Assembly: GCA_030704615.1 (NCBI GenBank)
Contig: CM060733.1
Location: 3,658,001-3,722,000, forward strand
Length of the DNA stretch: 64,000 bases
Reading direction: 5' to 3'
Origin: Takakia lepidozioides
Lineage: Eukaryota > Plantae > Bryophyta
The notes under the pieces were generated by a model, which saw only the letters and a program-made list of their open reading frames with translations, did not search any database and had not been told where the DNA came from. Both the position numbers and the translations under genes were made by a program. Shown here in pieces: positions 514 through 25,655 of this stretch. Each line of letters starts with the position of its first letter. The first letter of the stretch is position 1.

Positions 514-1998
514 AGTTGGTTTCTGCTATTGCATGTACTTTTCCAGGGTTTAGACTTGATACAACATGGTACCTTCCATGGGTGGGAGTGACTGAGCTGT
601 TGGGGTGGGCAAAATTCTGACAAACACACTTTCATTTGTGACAGTGAACCCTAAACAGTCATGAAGCTGTGGCATGAATACTTTTCTGACCCTAATCAAT
701 GGTGGCCCAATTGTGGGAAAAAGGTGAATGCATGTTGGATTATAGAGAGTAGCAGATGCAATTGAGCATAGGAACTAGTGTGAGAAGTTGAGTTGGGTGT
801 TTCCTTGAACAAATGTAGGCTGTTATTGTCAGTTGCTACCAGCAAGGCAAAGATGTATGCATGATTTGTGAGAGGCATGGATAGCTGAAGGAGCAGGGAT
901 AGAGTGTGGGTCCAGATTCATCCAAGAGGGCCACATTTCAAGCACAACATTGCCTATGATTCCTTGTGGAAGGATTGGTACAAGAAACCTGCATGGGTAG
1001 ATGGTCAACTGGAAGCCGCAGCAGCAGCGGCACAATTGGTAAAATCAGGCGATGAGGGCACCTTCTTCAACACATTTCAGCCTGTTTTTCCCCCTTATCA
1101 CAATCGGCCCTAAATTTCCATGTTGAATTATGCAAGTTAGCTGGTTGACTGAATCTTTGATAGATTGGAGTGACTTTGACATGATACTGCCAATGTGACA
1201 ACAGGAAAGTATCCAGAAACAGGTACAAGAGATGAGGAGAAGGTGTGGAATGAATACTTTTCTGATTTGGTCAAGTTTAGGGAGTGTTCAACACCATGGC
1301 TGAATAAGATGTGGTGTGGGATGGAGCCTTTGAATTGCTGAATTGGCCATTGCCAACTTGAATGCACCTGCAAGGCAGAGGCGAAATGGTAGAAGGCGGA
1401 GGCAAGCTCCACATGGGAGGTACCAAGCCAGTTGTGCTATGGTGTAGAGTTGGTTTCTGCTATTGCATGTACTTTTCCAGGGTTTATACTTGATACAGCA
1501 TGGTACCTTACATGGGTAGTGACTGAGCTGTTGGGGTGGGCAGAATTCTGACAAACACACTTTCATTTGTGACAGTGAACCCTAAACAGTCATGAAGCTG
1601 TGGCATGAATACTTTTCTGACCCTAATCAATGGTGGCCCAATTGTGGCAAAAAGGTGAATGTCTGTTGGATTACATAGAGTAGCAGATGCAATTGAGCAT
1701 ATGAACTAGTGTGAGAAGTTGAGTTGGGTGTTTCCTAGAACAAATGTAGGCTGTTATTGTCAGCTGCTACCAGCAAGGCAAGGATGTATGCATGATTTGT
1801 GCAGAGGCATGGTTCCTTGTGGGAGAATAGCTACAAGAAACCTGCATGGGTAGATGGTCAACTGGAAGCCGCAGCAGCAGCGACACAATTGGTAAAATCA
1901 GGCAATGAGGGCACCTTCTTCAACACATTTCACCCTGTTTTTCCCTCTTATTAGAATCGGCCCTAAATTTCCATGTTGAATTCTGCAAGTTAGCTGGT
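405..1998. repeat. Local direct duplication (405-1146 vs 1339-1998)
   Basis: Near-identical sequence starts TGAATTGGCCATTGCCAAC at 405 and 1339. The second copy lacks about 80 bp. The unit contains the end of the CACTA ORF plus a PDF exon pair. Confidence 0.9.
664..1050 (+). pseudogene. PDF-motif exon pair (type B), relic of a PDF-PPR gene
   Basis: KLWHEYFSDPNQWWPNCGKK|gtgaat (664-723), then ccag|IHPRGPHFKHNIAYDSLWKDWYKKPAWVDGQL (from 916). Repeated at about 1594-1880. Confidence 0.75.
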
Positions 1999-1999
1999 G

Positions 2000-2365
2000 G
2001 TGGACACATGTATAGCAAATGTGGGAGCACTGAGGATGAGTGTTCAACACTATGGCTGAACGAGATTGTGCGTTTGCAGTGCGTGTGCAAGTCTGGCAGC
2101 TTTGGATGCATCACCAAAGTTGGAATTGTAATAGATGCGATCCAAATGTGGGGAGCATCAAGGGTATGCCAAATGCCTCGTATGCCAAATGTGGGAGCAT
2201 CAAGGGCAAACCTGGCAGCTCTGGAAAAAGGGAAGAGGTCCATGGCTTCATTGTCAAAGCTGGAATTCTACCTGATGTGATTCTGAACAATGCCCTCGTG
2301 GACATGTATGCCAAATGTGGGAGCATCAAGGATGCGAAGGCAGTTTTCCAACACTATGGCTCTTG
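2000..2365 (+). pseudogene. Scrambled PLS-PPR fragments
   Basis: Pieces such as [19 protein letters not shown] and IVKAGILPDVILNNALVDMYAKCGSIKDAKAVF occur in different frames. Confidence 0.85.
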
Positions 2366-3904
2366 GAGTGATTTTGACATGTACCAGCGAAGGGGAGAAA
2401 GTGGGGCCCTCAGTAGACGAGTTGAAAAGCACTAGTTAAAAAGCACTGGCGCTTGATAGGGTGGGGCAAAATTCAGGCTGGGGTGATCATTGATATCCCG
2501 GACGCAATGTAAAAAAGACGGTTGTGAGTGAAGGACACCCGTAGCAAAAAAAACCCTGCTGTCTCAAAAAAGGAGGCAGTCACAAAGAACAAGGCACTTT
2601 GTCCAAGCTTCTCGAATCTAGCAACAATGTGGACAGGGATTGAGTCATTGGGAACAATTTATGTAAGGTGGCGAAGAAAACCTTGTCTGAGGATCACTGG
2701 ATATTTCTCTAGTACGGTTGGACTAGTAGAGATTGAAATCCGTGCTCAGCTCAGCTTCAGACTGTCTCATTGTGAAGGGTCACGGTTGACTGGACAGAAA
2801 TGGGATTGACATTGCCGGGCTCCCAAATCTCTGAGACGACATGTGGTAGTTTTATCTATAGCTTCTCAAAGCAATTGTTTTACATTGTTCATTATAGTGT
2901 GACATTCTCATAACGATATTGTCGTCAGCTGCATGAGCAGTGCATCTTTTTGGATTGTTGGTCCCCATAACCCTAATAACCTTTTGAACTTTTTAAATTC
3001 TCTAAACAAAAGTCTATGTGTTATGTCGTCCAGGGCATGTTGAATAGAGGTGGAAGTCATTTTATCCATCCATCTTCCACCTGGATGGTCAATGGGCCAA
3101 GTCATATCCACCTTGATGGTCAATGTGCCACGCCACATAGTTGCCCCAAATTCCTGTAGGACATCTGACACTCACCTCACACTCCATGACTCATTTGACA
3201 CTCATGTCAAATGCCCCATATGAATTATCTTGGTCAACATCTGTTGACCGTATGGGTGTCATTCGAGTGTGAAATTTGTAACACCATGTGGCTTTTCCTA
3301 CAATGATCCAAATCACACCTTGCCTCGTCTCACATGGGTGTAAGAAGAGCCGTTCAAAGTGCCAGGTGTGAACTATGGGTGGTGTTGGAAAAACCGGTTT
3401 CTGTAGTAGTGCAATTGCACTTGACTGAAGGGGTGATTTTTGACTGATTTTGGTGACAGTGGATGGAAATCAGAGTGCTGTCCTAATTCTGGGTTTGGGT
3501 GGTGGAGCTTCTCCAAAGCTTGAAGATGGAAGTGAATACGAATTTTAATGAGCTTGATGAGAGGGGCAGTCATGTGCACAAGTTTGTTCAGCATCTTAAA
3601 TTTGGACATGTTTGTTTGTTTCTCGTGGTGTGGCTTTGGATGGAGCCCTTGACGAACTTGCATGAATATTGTCAAAAGCTAGCCTTAACCCACCAAGATC
3701 CAATCCCACGGTGGATGCTTGAAAGTTCATATATAGTGAATGTAAGGGTATTTGGTTATGTTGTTATTGATTGATGCGGTTTGTGAAAATTGAACATTGA
3801 AATGCAGATCCGCCATTTTTCTTCCAGAAAAAAAAAAACACGGGATCTGCATGTAACACCGTGGGGATGACCCACCCCTTTTTTTTGTGAAAAATTGAAC
3901 ATAG

Positions 3905-4094: not shown

Positions 4095-4875
4095 CCGAAA
4101 ATAACTTCTTGAACGGTACTTCGTCGAGACTGACCCATTTCCTCCCTGCTTCTGTTTGATGTTCAAAGGAGAGAGAGAGAGCGCGAGCGCAATGGCTACA
4201 TAGGTTGATAAGGCCTGGCCACAAGATCGAGAACAGTATGGTGATGGAAGAGTTCAAAGTGCGGTTCTGGTGTAGAAGGTGGAGCTCCTTTGGAGCTTGC
4301 AGATGAAAGTGAGTATGACTCACAGTGACGCAGCCTTGTCATGCACAAGCTTGTTTAGCCTCTTGGACATGTTGAAATATTCCTCATTGTGTAGTGTCCA
4401 ATGAGCTCACAGTGACTCGCGTGAATGCTGTTGAAAACTAAACTAGAACTCCTTCAAAAAAGAACCTGTCACAGTTTTGATTGTGTCCGATTTTCGGGCA
4501 CAAACGTCTACAGTGCTGCCATGAAGTTTTGAAAGATCTCTATAATGGTGGGACAGCCGTAAAAGCAAAGTGTAGCTTTCGAAGTGTACAATGTGAAGAA
4601 GTTTGTCCGTTGTGCAAAAGTGGGCCCTTCATGATTTGTTCTTTGCCGTGTTGTTTACAATGTACTTGGGAGGGTCGGCTCGGTTTTTCAGGTGGTGCTT
4701 CAATCTATTGTGCCTCAGCTGCACCGTGGTGGTCCTCAGAGACCAATCAGTTATCACCCAACTACAGACACAAGCAGCGCACACAAGAAGTCCTTTGGGT
4801 TGGTGGTTGGTTGAATCCCCCTTCGGTGAAAGAAAAGCTAGCTGCCTTTATGACACAAGGTGAAGGACAATGTGG
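4095..4875 (+). pseudogene. 5' region and type A PDF exons of a PDF-PPR gene copy later interrupted by a LINE
   Basis: 4095-4220 is homologous to 10787-10912. Degenerate WWDSRKSK at about 4545-4570. TNQLSPNYRHKQRTQEVLWVGGWLNPPSVKEKL at about 4740-4840, followed by the donor G|GTGAGG. Confidence 0.65.
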
Positions 4876-5074: not shown

Positions 5075-8000
5075 ATAAAAAATTTAGCTCCTATCAACAT
5101 CAACACTCCTCAGGGTGATCCCTGGGAATTGGTTACTTATGCCAAATCTAGGGCTTCATGTGTAGTTTTTGGGGTGAATCCCAGGATGGACGATGTGTCC
5201 TTTAAAACTACATGCTCTAGCTTAGGCTTGGATTTCATGGCTAATGGTACCATCTCGAGACTTGATAACAGGGGTACGTTGAAGGTTGCAATGACCAAAA
5301 GTGCTTCTAATAGAGTCCCGCATCAATTCAATCTCAAAGAAGTTCGTCCCTTGACTGGCTGGAGAGCGGTCTTAGACATTGGTGATTCAAACGGGCGCTC
5401 TAGGAAGACAACCAAGGGCAACAACTTCAACTTGAGAGTTTCTAATCGGTTTGATGCTCTGGATGAGGTTGAATCCAAACAGCCAGAAAGACAAGATGCC
5501 CCTAAGTGTACGGAACCTGAAGGATTTGGTACTCTGAATGGCTTACCAATCCTCAAGGTTTACACAAGACGAACAAATTCTATACACGGGGTAATTGTCC
5601 CCAAGCCGTCAGATGGACAGTCTGTCCTAAGTGTGCAGAGCCTGAACGTCGTGTAACTGAAGGATTTGGTACTCTAAATGGTTTACCAATCCTCAAAGTC
5701 TACACAAGACGAGCAAAATCTATACACGGGGTAATTGTCCCCAAGCAGTCTGACGGACAATCTGCCCCTATGTGTGCGGAGCCTGTGCGTCGTGTAACTG
5801 AAAGATTTGGTACCCTGAATGGTTTACCAATTCTCAAAGTTTACACAAGACGAGCAAAATCTACACATGGGGTAACTGTCCCCCCTTTGCAGAACGGTTG
5901 GCCGTCCAGGAGCAATCACAAGCTACCTAGACGACAAACAATTCACACGCAAAGGGCTGGCTTGCGGCTGGCCACTTTCAACTTCTCAGGGTTGACCAAC
6001 CAAAGGAAACAACTTGAAGTGGGACAAGTTCTTCGGACTAATGATATTCATATCTGTGCTGGGCAAGAAACATGGGAAACGTCGGATAAACTGGTTGGAG
6101 ATGTCATTGGTTATAAATGGGCAGGTAAGATGTGTACTCTCAAGGCAGCCTCTGCCAAACGCGGTCAAAAAGGGGTCGGATTCTTTGTCCGTGATTTCTT
6201 GTTTACCAATTGTGAAATTATCAACAAGGGTTTGAGGTACGAGCATAGTATCTGGCTAAAACTGAATTTGAAGGGCGGCATGAGTACAAAGGACCTCTTT
6301 GTTGGTTGTGTTTACATGCCCACAGAGGGGACCCTTAGTGCTGACGCAGACAAGGCCTTCGAAGATGTAAAGCTGGACTGTGCTTCGTTCCTTGCCAAAG
6401 GTCAGGTGGTACTATTGGGGGACTTCAATGCCCGGGTGGGCAAAGGGATCCATCAGGACGATATCATTGGACCTTTTGGTGAGGACGAGCTGAATTCTAA
6501 TGGCAGACGGTTAATTAACTGTCTAGAAGAGCTTCAGCTTTTGACCTTGAATAACAGGACAAGTGGTGACCAAGTGCAGTGGACTCGTGAGAAATCCCAA
6601 ACTGGGGAACGTTCCATTGTGGACTATATCATAATGGACAAAATTTTGTTCCCCCAGTGTGCCAATGTGTTGATCGACAGAACTGATTATTGGTACCTCT
6701 GACCACTTCCTGGTTTGGACTGAGATCAAAAGGTGTTTTCCCACCACCAAGAGATCTGTGAAACGTTCGATTTGGAAGTGGCGCATAGAAGAATTCCACA
6801 ATGAGGAGGTCAAGGCTGAGTACGTCCAGGCCTTGCAAGAGGCTCTCCCTCATTTTGTCCAATCGCTCCAAGAACTTCAGTCACGCTCTGTTAACGCAAG
6901 AAATGAAGTCGAAAGAGCAGTGGACTCTTGGGAGAGTTTCGTTTCCTCCGTGGCTGACAAGATCATTGGGAGGAAACTAATTGTCTGCGGTAGAGCAGTT
7001 AATTGGTGGACCAATGAGATTAAACTCAAGATAGCTGAGAGACGAGCCCTCTATAAAGAGTGCTGCAATTTGGAAACCAATAAAGAATTGTGGGCGAGGA
7101 GCTCCGTAAAGATATCAATCAGCTTGTTAGGTCTCAGAAGAAATTATACTGGGACAAGTTATACAGTGAAATAAACTCAAACCACCATGGTGGTAATGAC
7201 AAGAAATTTTGGTTGGCCCTTCAACGTTTGTACAAGCCGAAAAACGGTCAGCAAGTACAAGCGCTGAAGACTACTAAAGGTGCAGTGGTGACTTCATCGG
7301 TTGACATTGTCAAAACCTTTGAAACTCACTACAGTATCCTTGGCAGAACTTCTAGGTCTAACAGTGAGGGGTCTTCTGCTGAATGGAGGGACACAGTTGG
7401 AAAAACTGTTCCTATGATTCAAAACAGCCCTGATGAACTGGAGTATATTTCAATGGCTTATAATGCTCCCATTAGTTCTTCTGAGATTGTGGAAGCAATT
7501 GAACATTTAAATGGATATAAAGCTAGTGGACCTGATGGTATTGTCAACGAACTTATCCAGCACGGTGGCGATCCCATGATAGAGGCCCTAGTTCTCCTCT
7601 TTAACCTTATCTGGAAGACTGAAATGATCCCCTTTCGCTGGCGACAGGGGGTCATTGTCAGTCTATACAAGAAGGGTGACAGAGAAGAACCTGGGAACTA
7701 CCATGGCATCACGCTCCTCAATGCTGTTGGCAAGACATTATGCAAAGTTATAAGTACTCGTCTCGAGGTTGATCTAGAGTCTAGAGGTTGTTTCCACGAA
7801 GGCCAAGCTGGCTTTCGGCGAAACAGGGGCTGTGTGGATCATATCTTCACTCTAAGCCAGATTATCCAGGGAAGGAAAAAAGAAGGGAAACCCACTTATG
7901 TTTTTTTCCTGGATGTCAAAAAGGCTTATGACACAGTGTGGAGAGATGGCCTATGGTTCCGCCTTTGGTCTTGTGGGATCAAGGGAAAGATGTGGAGAGT

Positions 8001-9555
8001 TGTCCACAACTTGTATGCTCACACCAAAAGTTGTGTCACTGTTAACGGACAGAAGTCCAACTTCTTTGACATAGACCAAGGTGTAGCTCAAGGATGTACT
8101 CTCTCCCCTTTGCTCTTCAATGTTTTCATCAATCAACTCCTCGAGGATGTGGAAAGTGAGGGATTTGGGTTAAGGGTGGGTGATACCACCATACCAGCCC
8201 TTATGTTTGCGGATGACTTCGCAGGCATAGGGGAGACTCCAACCAATCTCCAGGAGTTGATTGATTGCGCGAAGAGATACTTTGATCTTTGGGGGCTAGA
8301 GGCTAATGTCAGCAAATGTGCAGTGGTAGCATTCAACGACAGAGGAGAGGGAGGAAGTGATCTTAAGTGGCAGTGGGGTAGCCAAGAGATCCCGGTCCTC
8401 CCTTCCTAAACTTACCTGGGCGTTGAGTTCTCCTCCAATTGTAATTGGGATGCACATATCCGGAAAGTTGTTCAAATTGGCAAGGGCAAAGCTCTGGGGC
8501 TCACTAAATTTGTCCACTGCAGAGGGGTCAACTCTGAGGTTAAGAAAACCATGCTTTGTCGCGTTATTAGACCTGCCTTGGAGTACAGATCTGCTATATG
8601 GGTTGATAACTCCAACCAGGCTAAGTCTCTAGAATCCATTCAAGTGGGGGTGCTTAAGGAGTGTATGTCAGCATGCTCCAAAACAGCCAATGTGGCTGTT
8701 CGGGGTGAGTTTGGCATTCCGTCCTTAAGCTCCCGACGAGATGAATTCAAGGTCAGATGGTGGGGTCAACTGCAACATATGCCCAACACCAGATATCCTA
8801 AGTTAATCGACTCTATATCTTGGAAACAGGACCGCCCTGTCAAACAAGCTAAGTCCTGGCAGAAGAGAGTAGAAGAGATCCTCAAGGACCTGGACCTGGA
8901 TCCGCAAGTCTTGACCCTGCTGGATAAATCTGACTTAGAGGCTGTAGTGTCCTCAGCCATGTCTGTTGCCATGATATTGTCTGATGAAAATGAAGTTAGG
9001 CAGAAAACTTCCCTGAACTTGTTTCCAGTCTGTGACATGGGGGAGGACATCTTGGATGACCTCAAGGGTCTACCCACTCTCGGCACTAGACTGAAATTTA
9101 AACTCAGGGCAGGAAGCCTACCTTTGAACAGCAAACTGAAGTAGAGAGGAAAGGGAGAGTGCAATTGCCCGTTGTGTGGGCAATCTGAAGACAGTATTCA
9201 TTTTCTGATACATTGTCCGGGGTTCTCTCACCAAAGAGACGCTCTCTTCAAATCTATCAAGGGAATTGTGCCTGTACCCCTGTTTACCAACTTTGAAAGT
9301 CTCAAGGCTGAGCCAAAAGCCCAGGCCCTCCTGAGGCCTAGTTTTTGGGCAAATCACACACAGCAGATTGATGCTTGTGTGAAGGGATTTCTAGAGGATA
9401 TCTGGAAAACCCGGATTAATTCTTTATATGGAGGTAAGTCTTACTACCAACGTCAGCCCCTGACAGAGGTAGGTTCTGTCCCTTTTGTTCCCGCTCAAAT
9501 TGGGCGTGGGGTCAATGGCCACAAGGCTACGGCAAACAACGTCTTATGAGTACAA
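5075..9555 (+). mobile_element. Non-LTR retrotransposon (LINE; APE-RT-CCHC), frameshifted, with a 15-bp TSD
   Basis: APE motifs (QETW, VYMP, LLGDFNARVG, IVDYI) in 5770-6702. RT motifs (KASGPDG, QAGFR, FLDVKKAYD, QGCTLSPLLF, FADD) in 7090-8409. CPLC...H...C near 9165-9215. TSD TCTCTCCCCAGCACA at 5060-5074 and 9556-9570. Frameshifts near 6690, 7095 and 8405, and a stop at 9142. Confidence 0.93.
5517..5885 (+). repeat. About 2.6 tandem copies of a 141-bp (47-codon) unit in the LINE 5' coding region
   Basis: Units start CTGAAGGATTTGGTAC at 5517 and 5657, and CTGAAAGATTTGGTAC at 5798. Each encodes FGTLNGLPILKVYTRR. The first unit is 140 bp, causing a frameshift. Confidence 0.9.
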
Positions 9556-9750
9556 TCTCTCCCCAGCACATTTTTAAAGTCTTGGGACCAATTCAGAGTA
9601 GGAGCTAGTGTGTGATCAGTAGGGTTTGGGTGTTTGCTAGAAAAAATTCAGCTGTCATTGTCAGCTTCTAGCAGCAAGGGCAAGGTCTATGCATTAATGG
9701 TGCTGAGGAAGGGATAGCTGAAGGAGAGCAGGGATAGAGTGTGGGTCCAG

Positions 9751-10735
9751 ATTCATCCAAGAGGGATGGATATCAGGCACAATAGTGCCCATGATTCCAT
9801 GTGGATTGATAGCTATAGGAAACCTGCATGGGTAGATGGTCAACTGGAAACAGCGGCAGCGACATATTTGAAATCAGATGCTCCACCATGGCCACAGCTT
9901 CCAAGGGAGGACCAAGAGAGGGAGTCCACAATACCGCTTCTGGCACTTCTGGGCACGTGAGGATGCTATGTGAGGCAGGGCAACTGAAAGAGGCTCTACA
10001 GATTTTGAAGGGTTTCAGCAGATTCAGCAGATTCAGATACTTATGTTTGTCTCTTGCATAAGTGCATCAAGATGAAAGGCCTAGAAGCCGGAAAACAGGT
10101 GCATGCTCACATTATCCAAAGTGGATTCAAGCCCAACGTTTTTCTATGCAACACCCTTGTTAACATGTATGTGAAGTGTGGGAGCATTGTGGATGCACAC
10201 TGAGTGTTCAACAAAATGCCTGAACAAGGTGTGATCACGTGGAATATAATGATGGCTGAACGAGATGTGATCTCGTGGAACGCAATGATCACTGGATATG
10301 CTCAGCGTGGGTGCGGGATGAAGGCTTTGGAGACCTATGAGCAAATGATTCAGGAAGGGTTGAACCCAGACCAGGTCACATTCGTTTCCATTTTCAATGT
10401 GTGTGCAAGCCTGGAAAAGGGCAAAGAGGTCCATGGTGATATTGTCAAAGCTGGAATTGTACCAGATGTCATTCTAAACAATGCCCTTATTGACATGTAT
10501 GCCACAGGCGGAAGCACTGAAGATGCAAAGGGAGTGTTCGTCAGGATGGCTGAACGAAATGTGGTATCATGGAGTGCTATGATTGCAGGATATGCACAAC
10601 ATGCGTGTGGGATTGATACTGCCAATGTGACAACAAGAAAGTATCCCGAAACAGGTAACATAGACGAGGAGAAGCTGTGGAATGAATACTTTTCTGACCC
10701 CAGTCAATGGTGGGACAATCGAGGCAAGAAGATGA
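9751..10735 (+). pseudogene. PDF-PPR pseudogene (PDF 3' half, linker, PLS motifs, then another PDF 5' half)
   Basis: IHPRGMDIRH...MWIDSYRKPAWVDGQL runs into the linker ...GHVRMLCEAGQLKEALQIL and L/S/P motifs with stops and frameshifts. It then joins EEKLWNEYFSDPSQWWDNRGKK. Confidence 0.85.
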
Positions 10736-10786
10736 ATGTCTGTTAGATTACAGAGAGTAGCAGGCGCAATTGAGCATAGGAACTGT

Positions 10787-14116: not shown

Positions 14117-14149
<33 letters not shown>
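13932..14149 (+). mobile_element. tRNA-derived SINE with poly(A) tail
   Basis: A-box-like GGCTGGTAAGTG, B-box GGTTCAAACCC (about 13974-13984), a 3' A-run of about 30 nt, and a probable TSD AAAAAAAATCA on both sides. Confidence 0.7.
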
Positions 14150-14152
<3 letters not shown>

Positions 14153-14424: not shown

Positions 14425-15320
14425 AGCAGGCCGTGTTTCAATCTCTACCCGCTCGGCCCTGATTTTATAGCACGGAGCAGAGCTGGCATGAGTTTCTGAA
14501 AGATCCTTCACGATGGTGGGACAACCGCAATCGCAAGGTGTGGCTTTTTCTTAATGTACGATGTGAAGAAGTTTGTCCATCCTGCAAATGTGGGTTGGCT
14601 CTCCTGTTAGTACCATGATTTGGTATTATTCCTGATGTTTACAAGGTTCTTGGGAGAGTTAGCTTGGTCTTAGTAGGCCGTGTTTCAATCTCTGCCCACT
14701 CAGCTGCACCGTGGTGGTTCTCACTGACCAATCCGACATTACCTAACTACAGACACAAGCAGCACACACTAGAGGTCATCTTGGGTTCATGTTCAGTCAA
14801 ATCCTCCATGGGTCATGACACAAGGTCGAGGACAATGTGGTGAGGGCACCTTCTTCTTCGACCTATTTCAGCCTCTTTTGCCCTCTCATCAGACTCGGCC
14901 CTGAATTTGAATCATGGAGCAGAGCTGGCATGAGTTTTCTTAAGATCCTTCACGAGGGTGCGACCGCAATCGCAAGGTGTGGTTTTTTTTTAATGTACGA
15001 TGTGCAGAATTTTGTCCATCCTGCAAATGTGGGTTGTTGGCTCCTGTTAGTACCATGATTTGATATTCTTCCTGATGTTTACAAGGTTCTTGGGAGAGTC
15101 AGCTTGGTCTTAGCAGACCGTGTTTCAAAGTCTGCCTGCTCAGCTGCACCGTGGTGCAGGTTCTCATTGACCAATCCGACATTACCTGACTACAGACACA
15201 AGCATCACACACAAGGTCAAATCCTCCATGGGTCATGACACAAGGTCAAGGACAGTGTGGTGAGGGCACCTTCTTCTTCGACCTATTTCAGCATGTTTTG
15301 CCCTCTCATCAGACGCCCTG
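14425..15320 (+). pseudogene. Tandemly duplicated type A PDF exon pairs
   Basis: TEQSWHEFLKDPSRWWDNRNRK|gt at about 14472-14537 and TNPTLPNYRHKQ...NPPWV at about 14727-14815. The whole unit of about 430 bp is repeated at about 14895-15315. Confidence 0.8.
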
Positions 15321-17311
15321 AGATGCATATTGAATTTTGTAAGTTAGCTCATTGCTCGTTGATAAGTAGGGTTGGGGGTGTTTGCTGGAACAATTCTAGG
15401 CTGTCATTGTCAGCTGCTAGCAGGAAGGCAAGGATGTATGCATAGATAGCTGAAGGAGCAGGGATAGAGTGTGGGCCCAAATTCGTCCAAGAGGGCGGGA
15501 TTTCAAGCTCCATTATTTCAGTGTCATCCATTCAGCCAGGGATTTCCTGGTGACATTGCCAAGGCTTTACTCGCAACATGATGCTTGTAAAGCTTCCTTA
15601 GCTTGAATGCTGATTATGCTTGAATTATTAGGTTTGTAAAGCTAGTTTTGAAATTTTCATGGTAATCAGCTCTCTTGAAAATCTGTAGGTTGCAAGCCAT
15701 TTACAGCGGGCCGTGGGTGGACTGGAAGACAGCCATTGAAAGTCCTGGTGCAAGTTAATACCAGTGGAGAGCAGAATAAGCTTCATATGCCCTTTTGGTG
15801 CTAGTTATCTTCATGTATGGTACTGTTGAACACCAACAATCTTTTGGTGAGATTCTGTCTTGGTGCACATATCTGATAAAGAAAGACGGTAATGTTTGTT
15901 CTGAAACCTGAAGGCGTGAAATGATTCAACACAACAAGAGCATTACGCGTGTCACAGTACAAGCTGTAAGAAAGCAAGAGATACATAGTTATACAGTCAA
16001 ACAGACAACTATCAGTTTCTGTGGAATCTCTTGCCAATGGCAGGATGGGTTGGGAATAGCCAAGTCAGGAGGTGAATGCCTGTCAAATTACCACATGTCC
16101 TTTTGAACACTGCCCCTGCCCTGGTGGACATGTACGCCAATTGTGGGTGCATTGAGGATGCAAAGGGAGTGTTCAACACTGTGGCTGAACGAGATGTGGT
16201 GTCGTGGAGTGCGATGCTTGCTGGGTATGCACAGCTGGGGTGCGGGGTGGAGGCTCCAACCTTTGAGAAAATGATGGGGGAAGGGGTGAAGGCCGCCGAC
16301 ATAACGTTTGTGTGCATTTGCAGTGCGTCTGCAGCCCTGGAAAAGGGCAAAGAGATCCCTGGTGACATCATCAAATCTGCAATTGTACCAGATGTCATCC
16401 TGAACATGGCTCTGGTGGCCATGTATGCTAAATGTGGGAGCATTGAGGATGCCAAGGGAGTGTTCAACACTATGGCTGAACTAGATGTGGTGTCATGGAA
16501 TGCGATGCTTGAAGGGTGTGCAGAGCAGGAGCGCGGGATGGGGCTTTGGACACCTGAAAGCAAATGATGGAGAAAAGGATGAAGGTACCTTCTTCAACAT
16601 ATTTCACCCTGTTTTCCCTGCTAGTGTTTGCTTTGACAATTCTAGGCTGTCATTGTCAGCTGCTAGCAGCAAGGCGAGGATGTATGCATGATTTGTGCAG
16701 AGGCATGGATAGCTGAAGGAGCAGGGATTTCGTGTGGGTCCAGATTCATCCAAGAAGGCCAGATTTCAAGCACAAGATTACCTGTGATTCCCTGTGGATC
16801 AATAGCTACAAGAAACCTGCATGGGTAGATGGTCAACTGGGAGCAGCGGCACAAGTGATAAAATCAGGCACTGCTAATGAAGGCATCTTCTTCAACACAT
16901 TTCACCCTGTTTTTCCCTCTTATCAGAATCGGCCCTAAATTTACATGTTCAATTCTGCAAGTTAGCTGGTTGAGTGAATCTAGTTTGGAGTGACTTTGAC
17001 ATGATACTGCCAATGTGACAACAGGAAAGTGTCAAAAAATAGGTAACAGAGATGAGGAGAAGCTGTGGAATGAATACTTATCTGAGCCCAGTCACTGATG
17101 GGTCAACCGGGGCAGAAAGGTGAATGCCTGCAAAAACATTTCAGAGAGTAGCAGATGCAATTCAGCATAGGAACTAGTGTGCTACGCTGAGTTGGGTGTT
17201 TCCTAGAACAAATGTAGGCTGTCATTGTCAGCTGCTAGCAGCAAGGCAAGGATGAATGCTTGATTTGTGCAGAGGCATGGATAGCTGAAGGAATAGAGAT
17301 AGAGTGTGGGT

Positions 17312-17565
17312 GACGCAGGGTGCTGGGCAATGGGCAAGATGTCTTTGTATAAACGTGAGTGACCTTCCTATCATCCTGGGTTTCATTTTTAGTGCATGTT
17401 TCTTTGTGAAGTATCTGACGACTTCGCCAATACACACCAACCTTTTTGCTTTGGTTTGTTTAGGACATGGGATAGAAGTTACCATAAACAACACTGGCAT
17501 TGGTTTTTCATATATGGTATTAGATAATTCTCTTAATTGTTTCCGCCTTGGCAGACGTGCGGCAA
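17312..17565 (-). mobile_element. Possible GIY-YIG (Penelope-like) endonuclease relic
   Basis: Minus-strand SIPCPK...VCIGEVVRYF...HLAHC resembles the IPC...YIGETxR pattern. Inserted between PDF and E2 relics. Confidence 0.3.
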
Positions 17566-17569
17566 CATC

Positions 17570-18091
17570 TATTTTCAAGTTGGATGAACAGGACGCTGCA
17601 ACTTACGTATTGTTATCAAACATCTATGCTGCAGCTGGCAGGTGGGACGAGACTGCAAAGGTGATGAAAATGATGAAGGTCAGAGGGGTTAGAAAGGAGT
17701 GAGGTCAGTGCTGCATTAAGATAGTGCACACCTTCATTGTAGATGACACATTCCATCCAAAATTCAAGGAAATCTATGCTGAGTTGGGAAATTGTCTGGG
17801 CAGATGAAGGAGGCAGGGTATGTGCCTGACACTCTTGCTTTGTATTGCATGATATGGAGGAGGAGCAAAAGGAATTTTCTCTTTGCTACCACAGTGAGAA
17901 GCTAGCCATTGCTTTTGGGCTGATCAGCACGCCCCCTGGGACGTGTCATCAAAAATCTTCGGGTGTGTGGTCACTGCCACACCGCCACCAAGTTCATCTC
18001 CAAGATTGTTGGCTCAGCAATTGTTGTACAAGATGCCAATCGCTTTCACCACTTTGATGGCTGGGTGTGTTCTTGTGGAGACTATTGGTGA
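17570..18091 (+). pseudogene. E2-DYW deaminase relic
   Basis: DAATYVLLSNIYAAAGRWD...[20 protein letters not shown]...[14 protein letters not shown]...CSCGDYW* with a stop and frameshifts. Confidence 0.9.
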
Positions 18092-21000
18092 AACAGCAGC
18101 ATCCATGAAAAGAAAGTGCACCACTTAAACATGAAGGGTGAAAGGTATCATGTTTTGTAACTGAATAGTAAAGCGACAGGAAGAGCAGAGCTGACAAACC
18201 GTTTGCTGTCGCATTTTTTGTGAGCTTTCCACCATGGATGAAGGATCATCCAACACCAGCAGTGAAGTCCCGGGAAAAAACAGTTCCATCATCGTCTTTC
18301 TTCTATAGATTTGTATGTTTTCCTGACTCCAACATTTATTTCTCTGTGCACCTCGATGTGTTTTATTGTTCTCTCCTTCTGTTTCTCTCCGTAATAGAGT
18401 ATCCAAAGATTTTAACATCTACCGTTGTTGTAAGGTACTAGCTTTGATAACACTTGGGGAAAAGGAGGGCAGCTGTGCTCAAGATCAACTGAATCAACGA
18501 TTATCTGGAACGACCGCTTCCCGCCATGTTGGTAGCTCTTGTAGTGTAGCTCTCGTAGTGCTAGACAGTTAGAAGAGCCTCAGGAATCTGATGTTAATTG
18601 GCGCCACAAGCGCTCTCTTAGGAATGGCAAATCTAAGGCCCATCTTTCTTTCTTTTCTTCTAGGCATTAGAACCGTGAACGCCAGCTTCTAGTCCTTCAC
18701 AGCTCCATACCCTCGCTGCGGAATCTTCTTGTCCTAAGCTTCCTGCAGCTCTTCCTGTTTTTAGGTTGGGGCGGTGTCCCCGTGTCCCCTTTCTCATCCT
18801 CATGGTCTGTACTCCGAGGTTATTTTTTCCTCGCTTATTTCAATACATTTCCCTGGCCCACAATACCCTCGTGGACATGTATGCCAATTAATGTTGGAGG
18901 CATTTCAGCAGATTCAGATACGTTTGTTTGTCTCTTGCTTAAGTGCATCAAGATGAAAGGTCTGGAAGCTGGAAAGCAGGTGCACACTCACATTATCCAA
19001 AGTGGATTCATGCCAAGGATGCGAAGGGAGTTTTCAACACTATGGCTGAACAAGATGTGGTGTCGTGGCACGCTATGCTTGCAGGGTATGCACAGCAGGG
19101 ACGTGGGTTGGTGGCTTTGGAAACCTATGATCAATCGATGGGGGAAGGGGTGAAGCCCAACCACATCACGTTTGTTTGTGATTCCAATGCCTGCAAGCCT
19201 GACAGCCCTGGAAAAGGGTAAAGAGGTCCATGGTGACATTGTCAAAGCTGGGATTGTACCAGATGTCATTCTGAACTCTGCCCTGGTGGACATGTATGCC
19301 AAATATGGGTGCATTGAGGATGCAAAGCAAGGAACTTATGTGTACTCTGCGAAGGGGTGAAGCCCAACCACATCATCTTAGTTTGTGTTTGCAATGCGTA
19401 TGCAAGCTTGGGAGCCCTGGAAAAGGGGAAAGAGGTCCATGGTGACATCGTCAAAGCTGGAATTGTACCCGATGTTATTCTGAACAATGCCCTCGTGGAC
19501 ATGTGGGAGCATCGAGGATGCGAAGGCAGTGTTCAACTATATCGCTGAATGAAATGTGGTGTCGTGGAACGCAATGCTTGCAGGGTATGCACAGCAGGGG
19601 CGTGGGATGGAGGCTTTGGAGACCTATGAGCAAATGATAGGGGAAGGGGTGAAGCCCGACCACATCACGTCTGTGTGTTTGCAAGCCTGGCAGCCCTGGA
19701 AATGAGCGAAGGGGTGCATGGTTGCATCGCAAAAGCAGGAGTTGGTGAGAAGAATGATGAAGGTCAGAGGGGTTAGAAAGGAGCCAGGTCGTTGCTGCAT
19801 TGAGATTTGCAACAGGGTGCACACCTTCGCTGTAGATGACAGGTTGCATCCCAGAATTAAGGAAATCCATGCTGAGCTGAGAAGATTGTCTGGGCAGATG
19901 AAAGGAGGCGGGGTATGTGCCTGACATGTGCTTTGTATTTCATGATGTGGGGAAGGAGGAAAAGGAATTTTCTCTTTGCCACCACAGTGAGAAGCTGGCC
20001 ATTGGTTTTGGGCTGATCAGGTTTGTGTGTGTTTGCAGTGCGTGTGCAAGCCTGGCAGCCCTGGAGAAGGGCAAAAAGGTGCATGGTTGCATTGCCAAAG
20101 CTGGAATTGTACCAGATGTGATTCTGAACAATACCCTCATGGACATGGATGCCAAATGTGGGAGCATTGAGGATGCGGAGGGAGTGTTCTTGCTTGCAGG
20201 ATATGCCAGCAGGGGCGCAGGATGGAGGCCTTGGAGAACAAATGCTGGGGAAAAGGTGAAGTGCAACCACATCACGTTTGTGTGCGTTGGCAATGCTTGT
20301 GCAAGCCTGGCAGCCCTGGAAAAGGGAAAAGTGTGAGTCCAGATTCAGCAGCAGCGGCACAATTCATAAAATCAGGCACTGCTAATGAAGACACCTTCTT
20401 CAAAACATTTCACCCTGTTTTCCCCTCTTATCGACATCGTCCTTAAATTTTCATGTTCATTTCTGCAAGTTACTGGTTGAGTAAACCTTTGATAGTTTGC
20501 TGAGATGTGGTATCGTGGAACTCGATGCTTGCAGGGTATGCACAGCAGGGGCACTGGATGAGGCTTTGGCACCAGATGTTGTGTTTGGTACACTATGTAA
20601 ATCCACTAAGACCAGGGAGTAGTTGAGCAGCTCAGTCTGAACCCTTTCCTAGTGCCAACAAACTCTGATGTGGATTCACGCCAAGAAAGGTCTGGAAGCT
20701 GGAAAGCAGGTGCACACTCACAAACATCGCAGGGTATGCACAGCAGGGACGTGGGATGGTGGACTTGGAGACCTATGATCAAATTATGGGGGAAGGGGTG
20801 AAGCCCAACCACATCATGTTTTTGTGTGATTGCAATGCTTGTGCAAGCCTGGCAGCCCTGGAAAAGGTCAAAAGAGGTCTATGGTGACATTGTCAAAGCT
20901 GGAATTGTACCAGATGTCATTCTGAACTCTGCCCTGGTGGACATGTATGCCCAATGTGGGTGCATTGAGGATGCAAAGCAAGGAACTTATGTGTACTCTG

Positions 21001-21542
21001 TTTATGTACTGGGTGTGGCAGGGAGGCTTTGGAGATTGTGAATGGGTGATGCCTGGTAGGTGAACGTCATGTGTATTCTGATGCCTTTGCTAGTCTTTGA
21101 GCACTGAAAAAGTGCAGAGGATCTGTATGTATTTGTAAGCCTATACGTTCTGATGTGAGGTTCTCTGGTTTTATGACAGGAACAAAACAATTGTGATCAG
21201 GAAGTGAAGGGCCATCTCCTATTGGAATTCCTCAATCAACATAGTTGGGCCTGAATAAAACATCAATGGACTAGGCCTTTCGTCTTCACTAGGTGTTGCT
21301 GCTAAAAAAATAACCGATTGTGAGAGGGTCCCTAATCGAATGATGCTTCCAAGTACAGGTGAAGCAGAGGAATATAGCATACTGTTACATCGCACCTTGC
21401 ACCTAACTTCCCAACAAAGCGGTGTAGCATCAACCTCGGTCTGAGAGAGAAAGCCACAGTTCTATAGATTAGCGTGATTAATTTTAAAGTCGCACTCTTA
21501 GGGTTTAATTCTCCTAAAAAACCCTACTTTCATCTGCCCCTG

Positions 21543-21592
<50 letters not shown>

Positions 21593-21606
21593 CCATACAA
21601 ACAACC

Positions 21607-22330
21607 ATGTCAACGTCGGAAATAGCCGACACAATAGACACTGAAACGGACCAACAAATCCAGGAAATAACCCACCAGGACATGACAAACGTGATATACG
21701 ACAGTTTTACGTCCAATGACCATCATACCTTAAAGGTGGGGAACACATGGAAGCGCCTGCCCTACAGGACAAACTCCCATAGTGCCTTGTGGAACGTCCC
21801 TTCGGACCGTGAAGAAATAGCAATCTTCGTAGGTATTGGCAAAACCGGGAATTACAGATTCGTGACTTTCGCCAAAGAACTAAAAGACGCAAAATTCACA
21901 ATATTGATAGAAGACAGCCATTTCTTGTTCGACTATGCAAATACAATACAAAATGGTTTGATAATTGAAGGAGGAGAGGCGAGGACATGACGTGGTTAGG
22001 TGGAAACAACATAAGCTTCACGAAAAGCTCCTAAAAATTAACGCAAACAACTCTGGCTCGACGTCCGGTAACAACAAACGTCAAAAAACAAACAACGACG
22101 AGATGTCCAATACAATAGAAGTCCTTAACGAAAATGGCCAAAAAATGGATGGAGAATCCGTACGTTCAGGGGATCTCGTTGCAGTCAAGTGTAACATCCG
22201 ATCTTGGATGAATTTTCGTCAAAAGAAACACGGGCTTTCATTCCAACTAGAAGGGGTCAAACTGTTGGCCAAAGCACGAGAGGAGACAAAGTCGAATGAC
22301 GACAACTGGAGCAAAAGCATAGCTTGGTAG
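21607..22330 (+). CDS. Putative OB-fold ssDNA-binding protein, T7 gp2.5-like (about 240 aa, one frameshift near 21980)
   Basis: The C-terminal half IEVLNENGQKMDGESVRSGDLVAVKCNI...GLSFQLEGVKLL...NDDNW resembles gp2.5 VVDSKGKKMED..IGGGSKLKVKY...VKLQLESVMLV...EDDW (recalled from memory). The ATG is in an ACAACCATG context after a (CT)n tract. Confidence 0.5.
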
Positions 22331-22541
22331 AGCTTAAATTAGACATACCATATTTTATAAAGACCATCCTCCTTCTCCTTTTCAAAAAGTCTATCATGTC
22401 CCAATGCATGCTCACAACGGATAATAAAAAAATACTGATTTATCATAGTCCAAATCTACTTGTTGTACCAAGACGACCCATGGAAAACCCCTCCAACTCT
22501 CTCTCAAGTTCCTCCAGTATGGCCCATCCGTCCGGACGTCC

Positions 22542-22589
22542 TTCTCAGAAGTCGTCGCTAGTAGTGCGGAGCAACGCGAAGCCCTAGTT
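22542..22589 (+). mobile_element. Helitron-like 3' terminus
   Basis: TTCTCAGAAGTCGTCGCTAGTAGTGCGGAGCAACGCGAAGCCCTAG|TT, nearly identical to 3905-3952 with unrelated flanks. Confidence 0.5.
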
Positions 22590-22696: not shown

Positions 22697-23959
22697 TCTC
22701 CTGTGACAGGACTTTTGGTTAATATCTGTATGTCCATGGTGTTTAGTACATGCTGGGCCTACATGCTACAAACCAAACCTCAGTTGTATGTAGTATGTCC
22801 AAGCCAGTCTATTATGAAACTAGCTAGCAACTATAAGAGGTTAGGAGGTGAACCAGGAAGATGCAGTTTTCTCTTTTCTTTTTGGGAAAGGAGAGTAAGC
22901 CCCTTGATCCTACAAATGGTGACTGACAATCATTCTTTGTACCATATCCTTCCTTTCCAAGCACTTGTCTACTTCTGATACGAGCCGAAAACGTTGTTCA
23001 CTCTTGTGCGAGTATAGATGCTTCATCATGTTCTGTTACTGTGCTGCATTTGAATGCTTGAGCTGCGTTGGGTGTCTACGTGCAAGTACTATGTATCGCC
23101 AGCTCAAAGTGTATTGTCATAACTCTTTTGCAGTTGCTCAGTAGAAAACGAAATAATCGGGTTTGTATAATCTACATGTATAGCACTATCACCTAATCAG
23201 TGTGGTTTGTAAAACATGCCAAAGCAAGCTGCGTAACTTATGTGAGAGACTTCCAAGTTTGGGAAGCTGGTTCAAGAATCTTATGAGCACGTCACATACA
23301 TATCAAACAATCACTGTTTGCATGAGAGATTGCATGCCTCACTCACCCTCATTCCAACGAAATTTCATGGTGAGACTACCAAGTTCAACCAACTCCAGTT
23401 GTTGGGTGCAAGCATGTCATGACAGGCATGCAATGTTCGATACCTGCCTTTCTGAAATGTTGTTGATTTCCAAGTTTACTGAGCAATGGTTGGCATGATC
23501 AGTGATGCTGCCATAGGGGTGGTTGGACGATGATGCTACAGGATTTCGATTTTAAAATTGTTCAGGAAGCAAACACTCTCTCCCTCTAATGTTGAATAGG
23601 TCATACTAGATACACTGTGGGAAAGGCAGAACTCTAGGAGAACTGCAGTGCTCCCTGGGTTGGTTTTGGCTCATGTCATTGGCCCTTAAGTAATCTTCTT
23701 CTTTCTTTGACAATCCCTGGAGCAGCAAGGTGAATATCTGTACTCTTGCAGAAGAAGCAGACGAAAAAATAGTATGAAGTAGTTCTCCTGCTTACAAATT
23801 GTCACCCTCCCTCTCCCCCCAACATTTTGAAAGGCTTAGTGTAGTAGGTAGGTTTGGGGTAAGTTGCTAGCAGCATGGGAAAGGATCTACGCATTATTTG
23901 CCGAGGTAGGGATAGCTGAAGGATGCAGGGAGGGATTGTCAGTTCAGATTCAGGGCCTA

Positions 23960-24610
23960 CGACCAAATGATGTGGGAAGAGGCGAAGCCAGACCAGGTCA
24001 CGTTGGTTCGCCTTTACAAAAACAAATGAGTGTGCAGGCCTGGCAGCCCTGGAAAGGGGCAAGGAGGTCCATAGTCCATACTGACATCATGAAAACTGGA
24101 ACTGTACCAAGTGCCATTCTAAGGAGATTCTAAGCACTGCCCTTGCAAACATGTAAGCTAAGTGCAGGAGCATCAGCAAAGCGAGTGTTTAACAATATGG
24201 CTGAACGAAATGTGGTGAGCTGGAGTGCGATGATCGCAGAACATGCCCAGCGTCTGATCAGAACAATAAAAAAATTGTGCACTACCGGAGCTTTCATTCA
24301 GTTCCAGATATTTAAGTTTGCGTACGTTGATCTAGAGGGCCATCCTCTAAAGGGGGCAGTAGCTGTTCGGCGAAGTCAGTCTGAGTTACGCAGGCTACAG
24401 CCGGAGTCACTCTCTGTCTCCCTTTCTATAGATCTCTTTGATCTCTTGAAACTCATCTCCTTAGGAAAGTTTTATAAGAACGAGATCGGGCACAATGCCA
24501 GCTTTCTGCATGATGTCATGATGGGTCACCTGTTTTCCCTTTAAAAGCTGGCACATGCATTGCGAATACAAACAAAGGTGACCTGGTCAGGCTTAACCCC
24601 TTCCCAACAT
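23960..24610. pseudogene. Degenerate PPR fragments, including an inverted one at about 24545-24610
   Basis: Plus strand AKRVFNNMAERNVVSWSAMIA. Minus strand KPDQVTFVCIRNACAS. Confidence 0.7.
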
Positions 24611-25554
24611 TCTTCCCATCTCACATTACCTCTGCATCTCTTGGAGCTCGCAGGGCGGAATCCAAAACTGCCTGATCTTCTGCCACCAGCACTGCTCTGT
24701 AAGCACGCAATTTATGTCAAAGAGGAAGGAAAGACTATACGTGTTGAGATAATAAAAAATAGTGGAAACTTACATGTTCTCCCTCGAACATCTAGTCAAT
24801 TTTCTCTTCACCTCACTGCTTCCTGTGTTCCACGCGCAGAATGTGGCTAGAAAACTCTCGGCCATCACTAGACAACAGCCCATTGTAGCTTGGAAAGTAT
24901 TAGAGCTATCAGGTTCTTTTAATCTACAATATATCACACTGTCGTAACTCGTTAACCTTGCTTTGATTCCAATTCAAAGATGGTCATATTACTTGCTGTC
25001 AGCCTTCACTAGGATGAGCTAATGTCAGAGTGTTGCTTCACACTGGCAGAAGACAGTAGAAACACTTACGTTGACAGGCCTTCGAATGGCCAAAACCCAT
25101 GTGGGAATTGAACCCACTGGCGTGCCCAGCCAGAAGTGGGCTTGCATGTGGGCCAAAGTTGGGCAAAGTGCAAGTGCTTAGCTGGGCCAAACACCTGCCA
25201 CCAACTGCTCCCTGATGAACAAAATACTTAATGCTTCTGCAGGAAGGGAGATTGGGGAAACTCTAGCAAGTGATCTCGAATGCAATGCCATTCTATGATC
25301 TACTTTGGCTGCTCTTAAACTCCACCTTCAGCGCTTGGCCAGTTCCCAAGCCAGACAACCTGCACGCAAGAGACCAACCACGTCTCATCAATAGTTGGGC
25401 AAAGTATGATCGCAATGACACTACTTGAAATGGTCCATACTTGATCAATTTATTGAACTTGATATATATATATATGATGATCCATACTTGATGTGCACGC
25501 AGCAAAAGAGAGCAAAAGTTCAAGGCATCACACTCTCTAATCAACACAAACACT

Positions 25555-25655
25555 GCCCTCTCATCAGACTCGGCCCTGAATTTGCAGCACGGAACAGAGC
25601 TGGCATGAGTTTTTTAAAGATCCTTCACGATGGTGGGACAACCGCAAAAATCTTT
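25555..25655 (+). pseudogene. Isolated type A PDF 5' exon relic
   Basis: TEQSWHEFFKDPSRWWDNRK, homologous to 14472-14537. Confidence 0.75.

Follow-up and report, generated by a model that had tools for sequence, protein, structure and literature searches.

The region between 0.6 and 25.7 kb of the window, the whole 64,000-nucleotide stretch of Takakia lepidozioides DNA that was analysed, is probably a decayed array of genes in the same orientation that combined one or more OSB-type PDF modules, a PLS-class PPR array and the E and DYW parts. In plant organelle RNA editing, PPR-DYW proteins both recognise the site and catalyse the reaction. The gene type would be a C-to-U editing factor for organelles that bears an accessory module at its N-terminus. 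Every PDF-PPR copy within 664-25655 is dead pseudogene debris. The features are collected in Table 1.

The PDF pieces were detected by hmmsearch over all six frames of the window, using a profile built from eight Diphasiastrum PDF segments only. This foreign profile recovered half-motifs at all of the positions that a preliminary description of the sequence had named as 5′ and 3′ halves, on one strand and in the right half of the motif, together with two extra pieces. A second route, tblastn against the window with the best of its halves as queries, gave identical places. Against 3118 six-frame segments, the nine good pieces have domain E-values of 5e-10 to 5.5e-6 and the decayed pieces of 0.02 to 1. 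The 5′ pieces match profile positions 3-23 and the 3′ pieces about 18-60, each being the correct half. All 20 pieces lie on the + strand, in between PPR, E and DYW fragments that have the same orientation, and the same six-frame search found no comparable PDF match on the minus strand of the window. The PDF signature, of roughly 50 residues with P-D-F, a WW pair and distal LW and P.W, is present in the window halves, with single conserved residues replaced in several relics. The exon halves were searched and compared apart, none being joined into a spliced protein. The number of modules had been put at about ten; the pieces are real, but two of them are recent local duplicates.

Table 1. Relics of PDF modules, PPR arrays and associated features in the window, with the intact comparator gene; a slash marks an exon border.
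Feature	Position	Strand	Remarks
B-type PDF 5′-half exon relic	661-723	+	Conserved D and R replaced; donor AAG/GTGAAT; E 1.4e-6
B-type PDF 3′-half exon relic	916-1050 (profile match 916-1011)	+	CAG/ acceptor; signature PHF
Inter-module spacer, probable intron, 3′ half to next 5′ half	1052-1206	+	Exon structure of Diphasiastrum two-PDF gene
B-type 5′-half fragment	1207-1278	+	Truncated by edge of 931-bp duplication; absent from preliminary description
B-type 5′ half	1592-1654	+	96% duplicate of 661-723 (405-880 = 1339-1812)
B-type 3′ half, partial	1808-1876	+	First part missing
Short PPR fragments	2060-2423	+	
A-type 5′ half	4511-4569	+	One frameshift; donor AAA/GTGTAG
A-type 3′-half exon, best A copy	4742-4874 (match 4742-4858)	+	Acceptor CAGAG/; strong downstream donor G/GTGAGG; E 1.3e-8
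LINE insertion (endonuclease and reverse transcriptase ORFs)	5770-9549	+	Parts A module from next B 3′ half
B-type 3′ half	9751-9858	+	One frameshift, into linker and PPR fragment 9846-10611
B-type 5′ half	10636-10731	+	In frame behind truncated PPR fragment; donor now AAG/AT; E 3e-9
Partial 5′ half	11089-11118	+	A-type intron tail at 11261-11319 follows
B-type 3′ half, C-terminal part	11320-11373	+	TGA 11344-11346; from 11347 reads into linker
Largest PPR relic: linker and PLS array	11377-13544	+	Three reading frames, without E or DYW part
A-type 5′ half	14469-14537	+	Donor AAG/GTGTGG
A-type 3′ half	14727-14850 (match 14727-14765)	+	Acceptor lost (TG); frameshift after about 19 codons
A-type 5′ half with stop	14914-14976	+	In 442-bp tandem duplicate
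A-type 3′ half	15170-15267 (match 15170-15217)	+	Acceptor lost, frameshifted
B-type 3′-half fragment	15481-15520	+	Behind B intron tail 15360-15480; absent from preliminary description
PPR fragment, about 150 codons	16091-16537	+	
B-type 3′ half, best B copy	16744-16875 (match 16744-16848)	+	CAG/ acceptor; E 5e-10
B-type 5′ half with stop	17027-17119	+	Intron 17120-17311 joined directly to E-motif relic
E and DYW deaminase relic with stops	17550-18088	+	
More PPR, E, DYW fragments with stops	18887-20411	+	Others at 20726-20981 and 23949-24253
A-type 5′ half	25586-25645	+	Truncated before exon end; E 2.9e-8
Only intact PDF-PPR-DYW gene, comparator	52722-55660	+	5′ half ends 52796; 3′ half starts 53037 (predicted splicing)

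The two halves of the PDF are separate exons, with a phase-0 intron (AAG/GT...AG/) placed directly after the WWDNRxxK codon, and the window copies have canonical AAG/GT and AG/ sites at this fixed codon boundary. An intron at the identical boundary is found in every PDF-PPR gene examined, from Selaginella, Sphagnum and Diphasiastrum (two genes), and in Nymphaea OSB1. Since Euphorbia OSB3 is without the PDF intron and has both of its PDFs in one exon, the age of the intron rests on one OSB gene, that of Nymphaea. Each module of the two-PDF genes of Diphasiastrum has a 5′ exon of 78 nt and a 3′ exon of 126-162 nt, and successive modules are separated by an intron. The recurrent 151-nt spacer of the window agrees with this arrangement, and copies or parts of the spacer are also found at 1904, 4887, 10614, 14852, 16579, 16876, 20384 and 25556. 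For the intact gene, a further intron is predicted at 53219-53436, followed by the PPR-E-DYW exon at 53437-55660, which by Pfam is the only place where the array, E and DYW share an open frame.

A profile built only from PPR-linked PDFs retrieves named OSB1 and OSB3 proteins with E-values of 1e-22 to 1e-25, the matches including Euphorbia OSB3 (E 4.5e-25), Anthurium OSB3 and a cluster with Phtheirospermum OSB1. It reaches 1064 representatives at E<=1e-3, and one Psilotum match bears the Pfam SSB domain PF00436. These named matches, and the intron at the same boundary in Nymphaea OSB1, support the initial assignment of the motif as the PDF of OSB proteins. It is hardly credible that the resemblance is convergence or chance in the W- and K-rich leader of lycophyte-type PPR genes, unrelated to OSB. 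The motif is short, the domain tree leaves relationships unsettled and Pfam has no model for the PDF, so that the PDF-bearing ORFs are assigned 0 families; such a reading would nevertheless have to account for the profile matches, for nine nearly invariant positions common to PPR-linked and OSB PDFs, and for an intron identical in codon boundary and phase. The AlphaFold model of the motif has a pLDDT of 91.8. A PDB sequence search with the PDF profile found nothing among solved structures, and Foldseek and VIA-align with the model returned noise only (best Z 2.6), so the fold gives no functional lead.

The loci of the window are not themselves OSB genes, as the ORFs around the PDF pieces have no Pfam match to an SSB or OB fold and their neighbours are PPR fragments. 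The fusion of PDF and PPR proposed from the sequence recurs in Diphasiastrum, Sphagnum, Selaginella and Adiantum, where annotated PPR proteins have one to three PDFs at their N-terminus. The usual gene structure in Selaginella, in Sphagnum and in one gene of Diphasiastrum has the 3′ half and the PPR exon in one piece, in agreement with the preliminary description, which took the B-type 3′ half that runs into PPR sequence as support for the fusion. At this junction, 11377-11589 aligns to residues 7-77 of the PPR exon of the intact gene (45%, E 1.6e-12). The claim of continuity holds from 11347, from where the frame stays open across the linker and into the first motif of the PPR array, but not for the part before it, where a TGA occupies 11344-11346 and the first half of the 3′ half is deleted.

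The division of the PDFs into two subtypes, A and B, is borne out by the identities. The 5′ halves are 71-81% identical within a subtype and 38-57% between subtypes, and the B 3′ halves are 61-71% identical among themselves. Subtype B of the window (IHPRRPDF, KKPAWVDGQL) is more diverged than the annotated PDF-PPR proteins; its nearest sequences are the three PDFs of P0042, a protein derived from Logan, and a few PDFs of OSB type. Nearest-neighbour scores for B point both ways, to OSB PDFs and to PPR PDFs. The domain tree, which is weak, gives a support of 0.76 to a clade with nearly all PPR-linked PDFs and none to the position of B.

An A piece upstream of a B 3′ half that leads straight into a PPR array occurs three times: as 4511/4742, then 9751, then 9846; as 11089 with its A-type intron tail, then 11320, then 11377; and as 14469-15267, then 15481, then 16091. 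With the living genes of two and three PDFs, this repeated order supports the suggestion of ancestors with several tandem PDFs. As all four B 3′ halves that precede the spacer carry AT where a GT donor is expected, the B-B arrangement may descend from a single dead template. The A-B-PPR order is pieced together from broken parts, the window holding no intact example.

The decay comprises stops, frameshifts, lost splice sites, a GT>AT donor, AG>TG acceptors, deletions and the insertion of a LINE carrying APE and RT domains. The tandem P, L and S motifs of a PLS-class array are borne out by Pfam PPR families on the ORF at 10204-10746 and on the intact neighbour, and by tblastn fragments that extend across 2-24 kb. 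No PPR array within 664-25655 is joined in frame to E or DYW, nor do E and DYW share one open frame there, the stop-bearing relics (17550-18088, 19667-20018) being all that is present. The DNA duplications have identities of 96%, 85%, 84-86% and 77-80%, with introns retained; they include the 442-bp tandem duplicate (14452-14904 = 14894-15321, 85%).

It has been considered that some modules, such as 661-723 with 916-1050, are still in a live gene of a complex locus and are spliced over a long distance to downstream PPR sequence. This module is without a stop and keeps its GT-AG, ORFs of 372 and 265 codons remain in the PPR array, and contigs of two public runs of the same organism cover many parts. 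However, the module has lost conserved positions (WWPNC for WWDNR, PHF for PDF), the PPR fragments downstream are of about 120 codons with no in-frame E or DYW, the largest array, which would have to be read with two frameshifts, has no deaminase at its end, and the only E-DYW relics carry stops, which makes a live gene very improbable. In the public runs, contigs that match the PDF and PPR parts at 95% or more number in the thousands, but there are almost none for the unique spacer at 13.6-14.4 kb. Most contig joints are alignments switching between paralogues, and the runs were used only for this contrast of repeat and unique sequence and for direct joins. In some contigs, a 5′ half is followed immediately by a 3′ half, at the predicted junction of 14537 with 15170; the runs being of unrecorded kind, RNA or DNA, these joins may reflect either spliced RNA or processed copies. 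The contigs were not taken as proof of expression.

The thousands of near-identical contigs are also what a mobile element would give. The PDF pieces would then be gene fragments carried in repeatedly by a transposon (Pack-MULE, Helitron or similar), with no bearing on PPR architecture. They are scrambled and numerous, TEs are abundant in the window, and a first reading of the sequence alone placed a Helitron-like end at 21.5-22.6 kb. Against this, all 20 pieces point the same way and alternate with fragments of editing-factor genes of that orientation, and the same exon-intron structure occurs in annotated Selaginella and Sphagnum genes that look single-copy and lie beside unrelated genes. 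The flanks of the pieces are homologous gene introns as opposed to foreign sequence, and no unit is surrounded by inverted terminal repeats, the matches being to microsatellites only. On these last two grounds the transposon reading was rejected, and it is considered very improbable. Unlinked PDF hits or repeated transposon insertion had been named at the outset as what would speak against the fusion; in the window, each PDF piece adjoins PPR fragments of the same orientation and lacks flanking inverted terminal repeats.

In the preferred reading, that of a decayed gene array, each PDF module would consist of two small exons, with a further intron between successive modules. Such a unit, being of two exons and separated by introns, could be duplicated or lost in frame. 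In the local ancestor, an A-type module was probably distal and one or two B-type modules proximal, with the last B 3′ exon leading directly into the PPR array. At least three gene copies would have arisen by tandem duplication, at the DNA level because introns were kept. The later wreckage would comprise deletions between paralogous parts, re-duplications of 931 bp and 442 bp, the LINE, a small repeat and point decay. As the intron is shared by an OSB gene and by moss and two lycophyte PDF-PPR genes, the module appears to have been transferred between the OSB and PPR genes in the form of genomic exons, at an early stage of land-plant evolution.

In intact members, the PDF modules may add a sequence-unspecific grip on single-stranded nucleic acid, which would anchor the editor to organellar DNA and nascent transcripts, or else raise its affinity for RNA. 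Studies have shown that the PDF is responsible for ssDNA binding in OSB proteins (PMC4166229, PMC6963530). OSB1 and OSB2 prefer ssDNA over RNA (PMC4166229), and an RNA-binding role is therefore not the obvious reading. A broader proposal, which is regarded as rather unlikely, is that the modules are a functional, lineage-wide addition to the PPR-DYW editors of seed-free plants that tethers the deaminase to organellar ssDNA or R-loops at transcribed genes and so couples editing to transcription or DNA maintenance. A and B would be specialised, position-specific modules (distal and proximal) as opposed to mere duplicates, and seed plants would have lost the modules at the time when the MORF/RIP helpers arose.

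These findings point to a PPR subfamily, conserved between mosses and ferns, with one to three ssDNA-binding modules that were taken over, together with their intron, from the OSB proteins of genome maintenance, and suggest a link of RNA editing with organellar DNA or nascent transcripts. The window presents the PDF module as a two-exon cassette that changes in copy number by tandem duplication and has two subtypes in fixed order. Turnover of the family is fast, and a single intact gene is accompanied by numerous dead copies. For annotation, the small exons of the PDF are easily overlooked where they precede “intronless” PPR genes.

The window genes resemble the OSB family in the conserved PDF motif of roughly 50-60 residues (W..F..P..WWDNR..K...PDFKHK...LW...P.W), in its one to three tandem copies, in the organellar context and, for Nymphaea OSB1, in the phase-0 intron inside the motif. 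They differ in that OSB PDFs are C-terminal and follow an SSB-like OB fold, whereas those of the window are N-terminal to PPR-E-DYW with no OB fold nearby. With the PLS-class PPR-DYW editing factors they have in common the PLS triplets, the E motifs and the DYW cytidine deaminase domain, in the intact neighbour and as relics. In described editing factors, a transit peptide is followed directly by PPR motifs, whereas the window genes have PDF modules before the PPR array. A review of Physcomitrium lists RRM, LAGLIDADG, SMR, NYN, CBS and SAP as PPR accessory domains, the PDF not being among them (PMC9459714). Literature searches for PDF with DYW or PPR gave no description of the fusion, and the architecture is apparently undescribed. 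The same architecture is seen in annotated but unnamed PDF-PPR proteins of Diphasiastrum complanatum (KAJ7568884 and KAJ7535625 among others), Selaginella moellendorffii (XP_024517303), Sphagnum fallax (KAH8950714) and Adiantum capillus-veneris (KAI5061374). These have one to three N-terminal PDFs and then a PPR array, the same intron position, and a 3′ half that is either continuous with the PPR exon or set off by an extra intron; they are intact gene models, in contrast to the dead copies at 664-25655.

The preliminary description read the stretch at 664-25655 as an expanded family in which an OSB-type PDF motif, split into a 5′ half and a 3′ half and present as two subtypes (A and B), is fused to PPR arrays. 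PDF pieces were sought by tblastn of the window with its own best-kept halves and by hmmsearch of the six-frame translation, using a profile made only from eight PDF segments of Diphasiastrum PPR proteins. The two methods agree: all of the halves first listed were re-found, together with extra pieces at 1207 and 15481, and every piece lies on the + strand. The 5′ pieces align to profile positions 3-23 and the 3′ pieces to about 18-60, with E-values of 5e-10 to 5.5e-6 for well-kept pieces and 0.02 to 1 for decayed ones; the weak-scoring decayed pieces are located within homologous DNA. The subtypes A and B form real clusters when the halves are compared by identity. Models were treated exon by exon with no exons joined, and comparisons were made on half-motifs or database-returned proteins. 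The PDF pieces at 664-25655 are confirmed and the PDF-PPR reading is supported.

Features of the window, with strand where recorded
Feature	Position	Strand	Remarks
PDF 5′ halves	661, 1207, 1592, 4511, 10636, 11089, 14469, 14914, 17027, 25586	+	tblastn, hmmsearch
PDF 3′ halves	916, 1808, 4742, 9751, 11320, 14727, 15170, 15481, 16744	+	tblastn, hmmsearch
PDF pair of intact gene	52722 and 53037	+	
Duplication	405-880 = 1339-1812		96%
Duplication	14452-14904 = 14894-15321		85%
Duplication	797-1265 = 16624-17085		86%
Duplication	9805-10616 = 11320-12110		77%
Junction, PPR fragment to spacer	16579, 10614		
Junction, spacer to PPR fragment	1998		
Junction, A-type intron tail to middle of B 3′ exon	11319/11320		
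Junction, B intron to E motif	17311		
LINE / non-LTR retrotransposon	5770-9549		endonuclease (Exo_endo_phos) and reverse transcriptase (RVT_1) ORFs
Small repeat	10788-10911 = 4097-4219		91% identical, GA microsatellite at end
Second long PPR ORF	48541-50958		805 codons, E motifs; DYW part only after frame change near 50.7-51.2 kb
DUF538 protein ORF	57259-57831		ordinary plant gene beside cluster
Exon of Pyr_redox_2 (type II NAD(P)H dehydrogenase-like)	48086-48382		ordinary plant gene beside cluster

The DNA of the window is nuclear and comes from a seed-free land plant. For the intact PDF-PPR-DYW gene (52722-55660), which lies outside the cluster, the best protein matches are PPR proteins of Diphasiastrum complanatum, and the window also includes LINEs, microsatellites and ordinary plant genes. 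The second long PPR ORF has no PDF upstream, showing that the module is not carried by every PPR gene of the cluster. At 21474-22589, two ORFs of 127 and 121 codons, which overlap each other and lack a Pfam match, follow a CT microsatellite.

The cluster at 664-25655 is dead, with no intact copy. Its largest PPR relic (11377-13544) is spread over three frames and lacks both the E and the DYW parts; E-DYW relics occur only at 17550-18088 and 19667-20018, both with stops. The PDF pieces bear stops or frameshifts, have lost splice sites or are truncated. The cluster is valuable as evidence of how the modules of the PDF-PPR-DYW family are built, in what order the subtypes stand and how the family turns over. 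The PLS triplets repeat with a DNA period of 303 nt at 80-83% identity (11603-13021 against 11906-13324), indicating that the PPR array was enlarged when whole triplets were recently duplicated in tandem within it. The same triplet repetition, at about 74%, is seen in the intact genes at 49-50 kb and 54-55 kb.

DNA self-comparison of the window revealed duplications of several ages in which introns are kept. This identifies the copies as genomic duplicates and rules out their origin as retrocopies. The junctions look as expected from deletions inside a tandem array of co-oriented copies. Later insertions are the LINE, which separates an A-type PDF module from the B 3′ half that comes next, and the small repeat, of which one copy is in the intron following the B 5′ half at 10636. 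A partial repeat of the 5′ region of the LINE is seen at about 5560-5700. The alternative of a transposon that inserted here repeatedly is not borne out, as no inverted terminal repeats flank any PDF-PPR unit in the window.

It had also been suggested that the ancestral genes carried several tandem PDFs ahead of the PPR array. In three places in the window an A piece precedes a B 3′ half that leads into PPR, and in two places a B 5′ half comes after a B 3′ half. This arrangement supports the suggestion, pointing to ancestral genes in which an A module was followed by one or two B modules and then by PPR. Each of the four B 3′ halves with the spacer (the probable intron before the next 5′ half) directly downstream has AT at the position of the A copy's GT donor, so the B-B units may descend from a single, already dead template.

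Contigs from two public runs of the same organism (RNA or DNA), at least 95% alike, were placed on 9601-15600. The PDF and PPR parts attracted 3179 and 1836 contigs in the two runs, with almost none at 13.6-14.4 kb; the organism therefore has many near-identical relatives of these parts. Both runs also contain contigs in which 14537 is joined directly to 15170, the exact 5′-half end to the first 3′-half codon; such contigs derive either from a processed copy or from the spliced RNA of a paralogue.

A profile of PPR-linked PDFs, searched against 1.84 billion proteins, matched 1064 representative proteins at E<=1e-3. Multi-PDF proteins top the list, which includes named OSB3 proteins (Euphorbia, Anthurium), a cluster with OSB1 (Phtheirospermum) and one Psilotum match with Pfam SSB. 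PPR arrays also occur in 15 of the 150 best representatives, from Diphasiastrum, several Sphagnum species, Selaginella and Adiantum. The fusion is therefore real elsewhere, with one to three PDFs, always N-terminal. The Ginkgo, Cryptomeria and angiosperm PPR matches of the intact-gene search have no PDFs. In the domain tree, one clade (support 0.76) comprises the window's A, B and intact 3′ halves along with almost every PPR-linked PDF; the tree gives no resolution inside it, and its placing of B-type next to a few OSB-type PDFs is unsupported.

C-to-U editing in organelles is carried out by PPR-DYW proteins. The AlphaFold model obtained for the PDF module is confident (pLDDT 91.8) and has three short strands between two helices, and no solved relative was found by PDB profile search or structure searches with the model. 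In OSB proteins the PDF is responsible for binding ssDNA, which is preferred over dsDNA and RNA (PMC4166229, PMC6963530). N-terminal PDFs could provide the editor with an additional, unspecific hold on single-stranded nucleic acid, and we infer that the target would most simply be organellar ssDNA near transcribed genes. The PDF-PPR-DYW family is apparently undescribed: in the literature searched, no paper mentions a PDF motif and DYW together, and the single paper that names both the motif and pentatricopeptide deals with each in a separate, unrelated section. A review of Physcomitrium PPR proteins gives six accessory domains, PDF not among them (PMC9459714).

The intron splitting the PDF is in phase 0, immediately 3′ of the codon for K in WWDNRxxK. 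The 5′-half exon ends in AAG followed by GT in all copies except at 4569 (AAA/GT), 10731 (AAG/AT) and 25645 (truncated). B-type and intact 3′ halves start directly after CAG and the A-type 3′ half at 4742 after CAGAG; at 14727 and 15170 (A-type) TG replaces AG. In A-type and intact copies (4715-4741, 14700-14726, 53013-53036), the last intron codons, read in the 3′-exon frame, give S-A-A-P/H-W-W, which the Diphasiastrum profile aligns to the WW of the motif; this may be chance or a trace of the intron's origin.

Annotated proteins were mapped onto their own genomic DNA for comparison. The same boundary and phase occur in Selaginella XP_024517303, Sphagnum fallax KAH8950714, both PDFs of Diphasiastrum KAJ7535625 and PDF2 of KAJ7568884. 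In the Diphasiastrum two-PDF genes, the module comprises a 78-nt exon and a 126-162-nt exon, with a further intron between modules; in the window, a 151-nt spacer recurs at the equivalent place, between a 3′ half and the following 5′ half. In KAJ7535625, Selaginella and Sphagnum, the last 3′ half and the PPR exon form one uninterrupted exon. The B 3′ half at 11320 likewise runs straight into a linker and the first PPR motif, as first described, and so does that at 9751. KAJ7568884 has one more intron between these parts; like it, the intact gene has a frame-compatible predicted splice pair (CAG/GTATTA ... TGCAG/) at 53219 and 53437. Among OSB genes, Nymphaea thermarum OSB1 (locus L006, 2513-2915) shares the phase-0 intron inside the PDF at the same boundary as the PDF-PPR genes, whereas Euphorbia OSB3 (locus L001, 3056-3574) carries two PDFs in one exon, indicating that some angiosperm OSB genes have lost the intron.
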